Sequence record: PP695294.1
Direction: 5' to 3' (one strand)
DNA length: 64,000 nt
Below, piece after piece: positions 2,341-18,458 of the stretch. The translations under genes and the position numbers were made by a program. The notes under the pieces are model-generated. The model was not told the origin of the DNA, ran no database searches, and saw only the letters and a program-made list of their open reading frames with translations. Every line of letters begins with the position of its first letter. Positions within the stretch are counted from its first letter, which is position 1.

Positions 2341-3246
2341 ATGGCACTCGAAAACGCTTACAGCGGTAATCCCTTTAATGCACTTGACCTTACTCGCACC
2401 AAGGCAGACCTGGAATTAGCCCGTAAACTTAACCAAACTGTCTCACAGTCCGATGAAGTTCATTACGTTGTTGAGACCGCTGATGTAAAACCGTTTCCTT
2501 TGCCGATTGTTATCGGCGACGACGTTTATGTATACGCAGCCACGTTTACCACGCTGGATAAGACCAACGAGCTAAAAATACGAAACCCAGTCGAACACGC
2601 ATTGCGTCTCGACCAGGCTCGCTGGGAATTGGTGTGGAAACGGAGTAATGGTAAGCTTGCTGCACTGATGGCACAGATGCCCTACCACCATGAGATTTTC
2701 AGCAAATGGGTGTCGGATGCGATTACCCACACGTTTGCACTTGCTCCATATCAAAGTGGGCAAATCAAAGCGTTGGCTGCATTGTTCTCTGTGGGACAGT
2801 TCTATAATCACGTCGAAGATGATGTGAAAGCTTTACGTTTGCAGCAGATGCTGGAGCAACAATTAGGCTTACCTGCGGAACTGTTTGAATCAGTGACAGG
2901 CCACACAGAATATCTTTTCCCGCGTAATATCGCAGAATTCGTCGAAATGGTGCAGGCTGCAGATATCACTCCGCGGGTGCGTGACCTGAGCATTCTGTCT
3001 CTGCAGCAGATGTTGAATACCAGCTTCTTCGGGGTGAGTTATGAAAAACAACTCGCTACTAGCGCCATCGAATATCCGCCTAGTCTCTTCGTTATGATTA
3101 AGGCTTGTCTGGATAATAACATGTTTAACCGCAGTCGGTTAGGTGGGATTGTGAAGAAGTCAGACACCGCTAAGAAACGCGATAAGTTTGAATTCACTTA
3201 CAACCTTCTGTTGAATCAAAACACCAAACCACTGAACATCAAGTAA
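2341..3246 (+). CDS. Conserved virion structural protein (start revised to 2341, 301 aa)
   Basis: AAGGA SD before ATG 2341. The track start at 2179 overlaps the sheath gene. Syntenic with phiKZ gp28. Confidence 0.65.
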   Translation: MALENAYSGNPFNALDLTRTKADLELARKLNQTVSQSDEVHYVVETADVKPFPLPIVIGDDVYVYAATFTTLDKTNELKIRNPVEHALRLDQARWELVWKRSNGKLAALMAQMPYHHEIFSKWVSDAITHTFALAPYQSGQIKALAALFSVGQFYNHVEDDVKALRLQQMLEQQLGLPAELFESVTGHTEYLFPRNIAEFVEMVQAADITPRVRDLSILSLQQMLNTSFFGVSYEKQLATSAIEYPPSLFVMIKACLDNNMFNRSRLGGIVKKSDTAKKRDKFEFTYNLLLNQNTKPLNIK

Positions 3247-15907: not shown

Positions 15908-15983
15908 GGGGGTATGGCGCAATTGGTAGCGCACCGGTCTCCAAAACCGAAGGTTCGAGGTTCGAAACCTCGTGCCCCCGCCA
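15908..15983 (+). tRNA. trnW: tRNA-Trp(CCA)
   Basis: 76-nt cloverleaf: acceptor GGGGGUA/UGCCCCC, anticodon loop CU-CCA-AA, T-loop UUCGAAA, encoded 3' CCA. Confidence 0.93.
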
Positions 15984-16565: not shown

Positions 16566-16687
16566 GGTTTACAGGCGATGGGTTTTCCCGTAAGGGCCCC
16601 ACTTACAGACTGGCGTCTCCACGACAACCGTCCCTAGGGGACAGGCAAGCACCGGCCCATTAAGCCGCCATGCTACGCCTGTAAATC
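16566..16687 (+). ncRNA. Putative structured ncRNA B (~120 nt)
   Basis: Perfect 10-bp closing stem TTTACAGGCG (16568-16577)/CGCCTGTAAA (16676-16685) enclosing CCC-GTAA-GGG, TGGCG/CGCCA and GTCCC/GGGAC. Confidence 0.6.
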
Positions 16688-16691
16688 CACA

Positions 16692-16893
16692 ATCTGATAA
16701 CCGAATGGGATTGAGTTCCCAGTGTTAGGGTGACTGTGTGTCACCGTAGGCGCGGTACCTCATACGGCCGGTACGCCACGAATGTACGTGATAGCGGGTG
16801 GTGCTTGGAGACGCTAAGACCTGACCTTGCGGCCAGGCTCAGAAGAAGAAGTCCATCACCTGCAATCAGAAATGAATTTAGGTTAATTATCGG
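16692..16893 (+). ncRNA. Putative structured ncRNA C (~200 nt)
   Basis: Closing pairing 16694-16702/16881-16893; GGTGAC/GTCACC; 10-bp helix 16794-16803/16854-16863 with G-U pairs. Confidence 0.5.
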
Positions 16894-16934: not shown

Positions 16935-17320
16935 CGAACAATACCAGAGTGACTTTACGAGGTTACTGTGGTATATGTCGGTGCTCCGGGCAACGTGTTG
17001 CCGCAGATAGGCCCGAGGGAGCTGAGTGCACTAACACACGCCGGGATGCACCGGCACCTTACAATGGGAGCGCTGTCACCATCAGTGATGACAGGAGTGA
17101 AGGATTCGTACCTCACTCGACTGGGCGGAAGCCTGGGCGTTCCCCCATCTTCACATCATGGCCGGCTTGCCGGTTCAACGTTGACGTCTCGTAAGAGATT
17201 TCCAGTCAGGCAACTGATAACACACCTAAGCGTCGACCTTGGACGTATGGTGTCTGGTTAAGTCCCCCGAAACGGAAACCAGTAGGGGTGTGGTACGTTG
17301 AGTGTAACTATCATGATGCC
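16935..17320 (+). ncRNA. Putative structured ncRNA D (~380 nt) directly upstream of a tRNA-like element
   Basis: Back-to-back helices ATACCA/TGGTAT, GGCAAC/GTTGCC, GCCGG/CCGGC, CTGTCA/TGACAG, GAGTGA/TCACTC, GACTGG/CCAGTC, TCTC-GTAA-GAGA and CTGGTT/AACCAG. Confidence 0.6.
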
Positions 17321-17329
17321 ATGAACAAT

Positions 17330-17399
17330 GGCTTTGTAGCTCAGGTAGGTAGAGCAACCTCTTCGAGGAAGGTCGCCGGTTCGAGTCCGGTCAAAGCAA
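17330..17399 (+). ncRNA. tRNA-like RNA with a 13-nt anticodon arm (tRNA mimic or pseudo-tRNA)
   Basis: Canonical U8A9, GCUC/GAGC D-arm, AGGUC variable loop and GCCGG-UUCGAGU-CCGGU T-arm; anticodon arm 4 nt short; G1-A72 mismatch; no CCA. Confidence 0.75.
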
Positions 17400-17476
17400 G
17401 AGCAGCGAAGTTAGAGGAATTAACACCCGACTCATAATCGGATATTTCGCGGGTTCGAATCCCTGCCACTTGCTCG
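17400..17476 (+). tRNA. Degenerate tRNA with CAU anticodon (Met or Ile2; possible pseudogene)
   Basis: Anticodon arm CCCGA-CUCAUAA-UCGGA and T-loop UUCGAAU. T-stem bulged, acceptor stem imperfect, no CCA. Confidence 0.6.
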
Positions 17477-17486
17477 CCCTATGTAA

Positions 17487-17505
17487 ACTCAGATATATTT
17501 TACCT
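17487..17505 (+). promoter_or_regulatory. Variant early (vRNAP) promoter-like motif before the HNH gene
   Basis: CAGATATATTTTACCTAAG resembles AGATATTACCTAAG at 19434. Confidence 0.45.
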
Positions 17506-17538
17506 AAGAGAATAGGTAAACGTATTTGAGAGGTAATA

Positions 17539-18078
17539 ATGAAAGATTTAACCCTACCACCAGGCGACTGGGCACCGTGTCCGGATGCGCCCGATTACTT
17601 CATGGTTTCGAGAAAAGGTGAATTATATTCACTTCGTTCAAACCGTATTGTTTCTCAAAATGTGGTTGGAAATGGGTATTTAGCCCACGTTACAAAAATA
17701 GGCGGAAGGAAAGGTGTTAATGTGGTGCTTAAAACGCACATACAGGTCGCCAAAGCTTTCCACCCTAATCCTGAGAACAAGCCAGAAGTGAACCACAAAA
17801 ACGGTATTAAGTCCTGTAATGAGGACTGGAACGTTGAATGGTCGACGCGACGTGAAAATCACGAACATGCTGTCGAACATGGGCTTTTCTCTTGTATAAA
17901 TGACCATCGTGGTCAACGTTCTCCGAAGATGACTGGAATGGAGATTCGCGAACTCTTAGAAAACCCGAGCGGCAGCCTTAAGCAATGCGCGGAAGAGTAT
18001 AACGTGGATCGTAAAACTATCCAGAACATTCGGAGTAACCCAGCACGTTACTTGTCAATGACATTGACTAAAAAGTAA
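17539..18078 (+). CDS. Free-standing NUMOD4/HNH homing endonuclease
   Basis: Y.VS..G...S N-terminal motif; HIQVAKAF.PNPENKPEVNHKNGIK..N...NVEW.T..EN..HA; C-terminal HTH-like segment; GAGG SD. Confidence 0.9.
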   Translation: MKDLTLPPGDWAPCPDAPDYFMVSRKGELYSLRSNRIVSQNVVGNGYLAHVTKIGGRKGVNVVLKTHIQVAKAFHPNPENKPEVNHKNGIKSCNEDWNVEWSTRRENHEHAVEHGLFSCINDHRGQRSPKMTGMEIRELLENPSGSLKQCAEEYNVDRKTIQNIRSNPARYLSMTLTKK

Positions 18079-18084
18079 CCATCA

Positions 18085-18375
18085 ATTTGTGTTATCCTTA
18101 TCCCGAAGGCATTCGAAATAAGACGCGTATCCACACACGGGTCAAGGATAACACGAACCACTTCCGCGGTCACCGTGTCCATTGCCGCCTACCTGCATGG
18201 GCTGTCCTCCGACACGGTGACTTCGGGCCAACTTACAGGCCAGGGCCGTTTGGGTTTTTCTTACGCATCCATCCAGAGCCACCTCGCGCCCTAGTCTGTA
18301 TACCCCTTTTCTGTTCCTGGTTTGCCAACTAAATCAATTAAGCCTGGTGCGTTGCCCTGGGAACAGAAAACTTAT
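18085..18375 (+). ncRNA. Putative structured ncRNA E (~290 nt)
   Basis: Perfect 11-bp stems 18089-18099/18144-18154 and 18169-18179/18211-18221; 14-bp stem 18307-18320/18357-18370 with G-U pairs. Confidence 0.55.
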
Positions 18376-18458
18376 TCGGTTACACACCGAACCCACCCAC
18401 GAGGGATATGTCGTGGACTACCAATAGAAGCAGCAATAGTAGTAAGAAGGAAAGCAAC

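Follow-up and report, generated by a model that had tools for sequence, protein, structure and literature searches.

The window analysed here (64,000 nucleotides from sequence record PP695294.1) carries on its + strand a largely non-coding island of ~2.4 kb, which starts with a tRNA-Trp gene and is interrupted by two ORFs, one of 84 aa and one encoding an HNH protein. The tRNA-Trp(CCA) at 15908-15983 (+), called by ARAGORN and scored at 65.6 bits with Rfam, is the only canonical tRNA in the window; the equivalent islands of relatives hold up to ten tRNAs. At 17330-17399 (+) lies an element, referred to here as the tRNA mimic, that was recognized by an Rfam tRNA match, a cloverleaf minimum-free-energy fold and conservation with compensatory changes. 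A tRNA(CAU)-like gene of the Ile2/Met type, the partner (17400-17476, +), starts immediately after the last base of the mimic, A73. The mimic region is 100% identical to that of Salmonella phage 1252 and 95-99% identical to that of some 30 SPN3US-like jumbo phages (genus Seoulvirus), and the window is, by its sequence, that of an SPN3US-like jumbo phage of this genus.

Other features of the island suggest that it encodes several small structured RNAs besides tRNAs. Upstream of the mimic and separate from it lies a conserved structured RNA of ~225 nt at 16640-16865 (+), with 70-80% nucleotide identity across Seoulvirus, Machinavirus, Erskinevirus and five uncultured viral contigs. RNAalifold predicted 39 pairs in this RNA; double changes occur in 11 of them, and a long-range helix, GGGUGGUGCUU/AAGUCCAUCACCC, covaries. 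None of the Rfam 15 families matched it, and its core motif had no match in a set of 185,579 bacterial and archaeal genomes, one per species. In Erskinevirus-like loci it stands directly upstream of a tRNA. It is regarded as a candidate new phage non-coding RNA. Following an ACAAU leader, a unit of 82 nt at 17066-17147 (+) folds into a cloverleaf-like structure without the D- and T-loop motifs; its end is of the tRNA-His type, with G-1 paired to C73 and then an encoded CCA, and conservation of the unit extends to SPAsTU and pEa29, the second arm showing compensatory changes. A scan for a 7-bp closing stem followed by NCCA gave about 14 candidates against roughly 10 expected by chance, and only this conserved one was retained. 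The unit is taken in by a segment of 262 nt (17068-17329) between ACAA(U/C)GG repeats, which is absent from SPN3US.

Downstream of the partner, where relatives have tRNA-Asn or nothing, the window carries an HNH homing-endonuclease cassette (17481-18084, +; ORF 17539-18078, with Pfam HNH_3 and NUMOD4 domains), which is present in phage 1252 and missing from SPN3US and MET_P1. The uncultured contig L098 has a homologous cassette at the same insertion point, with a duplicated TCGTTCG from the 3' end of the partner, and homologues occur elsewhere in the island in pEa6 and pEa29. Between the cassette and the next gene, a hairpin-rich non-coding stretch of ~320 nt (18085-18400, +) is conserved within the clade, with 98% identity to SPN3US and 71% to pEa29. 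Related islands contain further units with a tRNA-type acceptor stem, a T arm and an encoded CCA, and with no recognisable anticodon arm (L004 2422-2501, L005 2346-2425 and L013 2236-2317; L004 1940-2042 and L013 2647-2749; L012 2290-2406). One type of such unit has a CYAAG-NCGG-CUURG hairpin replacing the D arm, and another, some 100 nt in length, combines a conserved body with acceptor stems that covary.

Sequence and fold of the mimic

The 5' strand of the acceptor stem (17330-17336, +) is followed by U8 and A9, the D arm GCUC-AGGUAGGUA-GAGC (17339-17355, +) and A26. In place of an anticodon arm there are 13 nt, A-CCUC-UUC-GAGG-A (17357-17369, +), forming a 4-bp stem with a 3-nt loop, UUC. 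A variable loop of 5 nt, AGGUC, connects this remnant to the T arm GCCGG-UUCGAGU-CCGGU (17375-17391, +), after which come the 3' acceptor strand CAAAGCA (17392-17398, +) and A73 (17399, +); CCA is not encoded. The acceptor stem has 6 of 7 pairs, G1.A72 being the sole unpaired position. The first-pass annotation had described a tRNA mimic with intact D and T arms, six of seven acceptor pairs and an anticodon arm of 13 nt, and the sequence reads exactly so.

Against the Rfam tRNA model RF00005 (gathering score 29 bits) the mimic scored 40.9 bits with E=2.5e-6, as searched in a 5-kb stretch on both strands, and the alignment spanned the whole element except for a 5-to-1 deletion in the anticodon loop. 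ARAGORN, run on the whole window, did not call it and returned tRNA-Trp as the sole call. Folded by minimum free energy, the mimic is a cloverleaf in which the 4-bp stem with its 3-nt loop replaces the anticodon arm. The energy of this fold is not unusual given the base composition (z = -1.05), so that the structure is supported by the model match and by conservation and not by thermodynamics. A comparison of the sequence with established tRNA structure shows that the nucleotides of the core and the elbow, U8, A14, G15:C48, G18G19, G46, U54-A58 and C56, are all present. Of the features of a decoding tRNA, the mimic thus has the cloverleaf, the D arm, the UUCRANY T loop and the elbow, bar G1.A72; it has neither the 5-bp anticodon stem nor the 7-nt loop with U33 and a purine at 37. 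As judged from these features, the mimic should be unable to pair with codons and is thus classed as non-decoding.

Annotation of the locus in GenBank is inconsistent. The mimic is labelled tRNA-Asp in Proteus phage 7 and tRNA-OTHER in SPN3US and carries no label in MET_P1; across the family described below, the names given by annotators are Asp, OTHER, Ile(aat)-with-intron and Pro, and in several other records an antisense hypothetical protein is annotated across it. In SPN3US-type genomes this protein, of 78-79 aa (VOG9117), covers both the mimic and the partner, for example at 2778-3014 (-) of L002. An antisense ORF could in principle account for the conservation of the mimic, just as its short arm could stem from an error of sequencing or from a deletion that a normal tRNA had suffered in one strain. 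However, the ORF is broken in the window, in MET_P1 and in EC001, and an ATG-started counterpart is absent in most of the distant relatives; it is probably a spurious call and was rejected as the cause of conservation. The 13-nt arm, for its part, is kept in all 12 SPN3US-clade sequences that were read, which are independently sequenced genomes and, in two cases, metagenome contigs. We consider the chance that the element is an artefact of any of these kinds to be negligible.

Conservation of the upper half and variation of the lower half

The retention of the short arm in the clade answers the question of the first-pass annotation whether relatives keep it. Six of the 70 sites of the mimic vary within the clade. 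Five of these are unpaired (one base of the D loop, position 27, two bases of the collapsed loop and the last base of the T loop), and the sixth lies in the T stem, where a C-to-U change leaves a G-U pair, so that none of the six breaks a pair. Position 27 is A or G and the collapsed-arm loop reads UUC, AUC or UUU, on a constant stem. The substitution density of the mimic is not below that of its flanks; constraint in the clade is therefore visible in where the changes fall and not in their number.

Machinavirus, Erskinevirus, a further Seoulvirus lineage and contigs of uncultured viruses have units of the same type in unchanged position. Together with 24 sequences from relatives (23 loci and pEa43), the window element makes up a family of anticodon-less tRNA-like units of jumbo phages, defined in this analysis by the following features: a place directly 5' of a tRNA(CAU) with zero spacer, a leader of the ..ACAAU type, G1.A72, A73, no encoded CCA, pairing of 2-7 with 66-71, a 5-bp T stem, a UUCRANN loop and no standard anticodon loop. 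G1.A72 and A73 are invariant across the family, and the units are 65-108 nt long. When IMG/VR and JGI metagenomes were scanned by pattern and 50,697 phage records by BLAST, the unit turned up solely in the Seoulvirus/Machinavirus/Erskinevirus group, and tblastn with the neighbouring protein reached no further relatives; as far as these collections go, the family is restricted to SPN3US-like jumbo phages.

The lower half of the unit is wholly different between lineages. The uncultured contig L087 has an arm of 16 nt with a 6-nt loop, and pSal-SNUABM-04 an arm of 17 nt with C33 and C37, which command-line ARAGORN reads as Pro(cgg). In SPAsTU a 58-nt hairpin capped by GAAA stands on the shared CCUCC/GGAGG stem, Huxley and pEa6 have a degenerate arm and a long extra arm (annotated as Ile(aat) with an intron), and pEa10 and pEa43 have one long hairpin. 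The units of Caitlin, ChrisDB, pEa4, phiEaH2 and pEa29 are without a D arm and carry CCCGG-UCGGU-CUGGG and a GUCGUC/GACGA hairpin. A 7-nt loop with U33 and a purine at 37 occurs in no member of the family. The short arm is thus one state of a freely varying lower half, and the single clean loss of 4 nt that the first-pass annotation had envisaged does not hold. Its suggestion of tRNA-Arg(UCG) ancestry fared no better, given the change of the loop among near-identical phages and the results of BLAST against 5,426 E. coli genomes, where the best matches were tRNA-Thr and tRNA-Arg with E of at least 2. An origin from the tRNAs of related islands was likewise tried and dropped, the similarity being generic and to Asn and Ile only. 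Nor does any relative carry a normal tRNA at the position of the mimic, where the first-pass annotation had thought that a normal tRNA-Arg might turn up.

The upper half, in contrast to the lower, is kept paired throughout. In 14 distinct top-half sequence variants, 154 of 154 pair cells of the acceptor and T stems were paired. When the 3' strands were shuffled among sequences, a mean of 78% and a maximum of 91% were paired, and none of 5000 shuffles reached 100%, a result that is not to be read as a probability, the sequences being related. One of the 14, L089, is truly of the pEa6 type, which makes one variant and one pair type fewer and leaves the result unchanged. In the RNAalifold consensus of 14 sequences both the acceptor stem and the T stem were recovered, all their pairs unbroken, and 11 of the 14 predicted pairs, which include three in a short inner hairpin, showed double changes. 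Pair types were replaced in a compensatory manner repeatedly at 2-7:66-71 and 49-51:63-65, and covariation was also found within the class that has neither a D arm nor an anticodon arm. For comparison, the neighbouring protein of 290 aa is only 27-47% identical between genera.

These data have to be weighed against the possibility that the mimic is a decaying tRNA pseudogene with no present function, whose stems were inherited from a functional ancestor and are still to be eroded. The islands contain other tRNA-derived fragments, and so much tRNA-like debris raises the prior for a relic; the tRNA content varies widely among relatives, homing endonucleases churn the region, and the clade substitution density is not reduced. 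In addition, some lineages lack the unit: it is missing with the partner present in L098 and L101, and both are missing in L099, L100 and L103, in which lineages the mimic is dispensable. On the other hand, not one pair is broken in the 154 cells, G1.A72 and A73 are invariant, and the 14 variants include bodies that are plainly not those of tRNAs. All six polymorphisms of the clade preserve the structure. Moreover, the decoding loop is lost in every lineage and yet the stems covary, for which selection after the loss is needed. The forms without a D arm cannot be recent derivatives of a working tRNA, and since they covary, selection has acted on a non-decoding RNA. A pseudogene is thus unlikely. 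The mimic would instead be a selected and maintained non-decoding tRNA-like RNA rather than a fresh deletion, and selection appears to keep the acceptor stem, the T arm and the elbow and to ignore the lower half. The claim of the first-pass annotation that the upper half is selected finds its support here, in stems kept by compensatory changes in distant relatives.

Leader, partner tRNA and possible role

The mimic is preceded by the leader ACAAU (17325-17329, +), with U(-1) before G1, and all members of the family have ..ACAAU, ..ACAAC, ..ACAAA or ..UUAA at this place. The CAAACAAU leader also stands ahead of some genuine tRNAs in related islands, which differ from the mimic in encoding CCA. 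ACAAUGG was considered as a phage promoter and rejected, as it matched the window 5 times with 3 matches expected; without such enrichment it is taken as a tRNA-type leader and not as a general promoter motif. No sigma-70-like promoters and no + strand terminators were found around the mimic.

The partner is annotated as tRNA-Ile or tRNA-Met in relatives, where it scores 30-47 bits with the Rfam tRNA model, against 18.7 bits in the window. The window copy has a bulge in the T stem and an acceptor stem with 6 of 7 pairs. Three alternative 3' halves of the partner occur in the clade on one constant 5' half, and EC001 shares the mismatched version of the window; the mimic is intact in both. Two D-arm types of the partner occur in other genera, one with a long extra arm, and they are found in mosaic combinations with the classes of the mimic. 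In L098 and L101 the tRNA(CAU) directly follows a ..CAAU leader with no mimic between, and so the partner does not need the mimic for its processing. The mimic behaves like an accessory module of its own, which comes and goes as the surrounding tRNAs do.

The main rival to a function of the released RNA is that the mimic acts only in cis as a processing unit. Its upper half would then be kept merely as an RNase P site, the released RNA would be a by-product, and cleavage would part the upstream structured RNAs from the tRNA(CAU) and set their ends, much as in a plant mitochondrial t-element or the dimeric tRNA precursor of T4. Several observations fit this. There is no spacer to the partner, and the invariant unpaired A72 together with A73 would give RNase P a single-stranded leader of two nt at the partner; the leader of the mimic itself is of the same type as those of genuine island tRNAs, and conservation is limited to the RNase P recognition surface. 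E. coli RNase P alone can separate polycistronic tRNA transcripts (PMC2190699). An unstable acceptor end together with a 5' GG is a recipe for CCACCA tagging and RNase R decay (PMC10275265; PMC5824355), and most members of the family, with G1G2 and a frayed 1:72 end, fit this rule. The rule is not universal in the family and was rejected as a general feature, because pEa43 has A2-U71. Against a role in cis only speak also the two loci with a partner behind its own ..CAAU leader and the mimic that stays intact where the partner is damaged. Deletion of the unit would just join the upstream RNA to the RNase P site of the partner. All told, we regard a function confined to cis as rather unlikely.

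The explanation that we prefer, and to which we give about an even chance, is that the mimic is a gene for a non-decoding tRNA-shaped RNA, an accessory module of the island with a selected upper half, whose role is that of a competitor or decoy in trans. A role in trans is preferred over a purely cis one because the partner does not need the mimic and because the mimic is intact beside a mismatched partner. The mimic would be transcribed on the + strand together with the rest of the island. Host RNase P would cut after the ACAAU leader (17329/17330), and a second RNase P cut at the 5' end of the partner (17399/17400) would leave A73-OH as the 3' end of the mimic, free of any trailer. The discriminator base preferred for CCA addition is A73 (PMC4477674), and the host CCA-adding enzyme, with this preference, would add CCA to the mimic. 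As the core and elbow nucleotides are intact, the expected fold of the RNA is an L in which the elbow is intact and a stub replaces the anticodon arm, so that enzymes reading or cutting the anticodon loop would find nothing to act on. It might then act in trans through its acceptor/T-arm/elbow surface, competing for, or serving as decoy to, a factor that binds this surface. Recognition by RNase P, RNase Z and the CCA-adding enzyme and resistance to anticodon nucleases, all named in the first-pass annotation, are reasonable expectations and are taken here as such only. The decoy step is pure conjecture, with a hypothetical binding partner or defence system behind it, and a search of a literature collection for SPN3US tRNAs or transcriptomes found nothing relevant. 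Against a maintained RNA with a role in trans speak the absence of the unit from some contigs, the unreduced substitution density in the clade and the ordinary folding energy.

Comparison with known tRNA-like RNAs

Non-decoding RNAs of tRNA shape are known from several systems. The vertebrate mascRNA and MEN-beta RNAs (RF01684) are tRNA-shaped like the mimic, with a good acceptor stem and T arm and a reduced, non-decoding anticodon arm, and are excised by tRNA-processing enzymes and CCA-tailed (PMC10275265). They differ in being nuclear and in lying at the 3' end of long non-coding RNAs, whereas the mimic lies in a phage tRNA island and abuts a tRNA. The RF01684 model did not match the mimic at E up to 10 and gave, in relatives, weak matches to genuine tRNAs only. 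Plant mitochondrial t-elements are non-decoding tRNA-like signals for RNase P and RNase Z that define transcript ends (PMC1920247). The sequence prerequisites of this type are present in the mimic, namely a leader with U(-1), an acceptor/T minihelix and an abutting tRNA. T-elements, however, adjoin organelle mRNAs, whereas the mimic adjoins structured RNAs and a tRNA, and its partner exists without it.

Among phage RNAs, T4 RNAC and RNAD are small stable RNAs of no known function from a phage tRNA gene region (PMC3014915; PMC9697503); they are longer than the mimic and come from an unrelated phage family, and are likened to it by description. Phage tRNAs with altered anticodon loops evade host anticodon nucleases (PMC10264068). 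These are, like the mimic, encoded by phages, and conflict with tRNA-targeting defences has shaped them; they still decode, whereas the mimic without an anticodon loop cannot replace a cleaved host tRNA. The tRNA-like domain of tmRNA and the YrlA module consist of the upper half of a tRNA without an anticodon arm and are recognised by tRNA-processing enzymes (PMC3985003). tmRNA has in addition G3.U70 and a tag reading frame and YrlA a Ro-binding stem, and the mimic has none of these: position 3:70 is C-G or U-A in all members of the family, there is no reading frame, and ARAGORN found no tmRNA. The YrlA and tRNA-Sec models gave weak matches far below threshold; with the tRNA-Sec model (RF01852, threshold 47 bits) phiEaH2 scored 15.1 bits (E = 0.72), its anticodon arm being aligned to nothing. 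By model and by defining features the mimic belongs to none of the families compared, and it is a further instance of non-decoding tRNA-like RNAs, here as a family of jumbo phages.

The acceptor end invites one more reading, in which the RNA is an aminoacylated acceptor with a use outside the ribosome. It would be charged by a synthetase that does not inspect the anticodon, the terminal mismatch would bar it from translation, and its use would lie in donating an amino acid or in baiting toxins that modify CCA ends or charged ends. A mismatch at 1:72 weakens the binding of EF-Tu, the acceptor end (G1.A72, A73) is invariant, and neighbouring non-canonical units encode CCA, one of them with the His-type G-1:C73 end. 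The pair at 3:70, however, is not G3.U70, the mimic lacks G-1:C73, the version in the window is without a long variable arm, and no identity set was matched, for which reasons charging seems very improbable.

A wider proposal is that SPN3US-like jumbo phages encode a set of non-decoding RNAs with tRNA acceptor ends as bait for host immune enzymes. The set would comprise this mimic, the units with an encoded CCA and the His-type G-1:C73 unit, which would act after CCA-tailing or charging, and its targets may be enzymes that attack tRNA acceptor ends or tRNA bodies. We hold this proposal to be doubtful at best; if it were true, the set would be a class of RNA-based anti-defence distinct from replacement tRNAs.

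Discussion of tRNA genes in phages mostly treats them as supplementing codon usage or as replacing tRNAs that host defence systems have cut. The mimic would be a phage tRNA-like gene which is unable to decode and whose upper half compensatory changes have preserved in three genera, implying that within the tRNA islands of phages selection can target the body of a tRNA by itself. A warning for annotation comes with it, as one and the same locus is named tRNA-Asp, tRNA-Ile, tRNA-OTHER or hypothetical protein in GenBank. The mimic offers a compact and testable model in a phage-host pair amenable to genetics (SPN3US or EC001 on laboratory strains of Salmonella or E. coli), and raises the question whether an acceptor/T-arm/elbow surface serves, in the infection by a nucleus-forming phage, as a processing signal, as a sponge for an enzyme that binds tRNA or as bait for a defence system.
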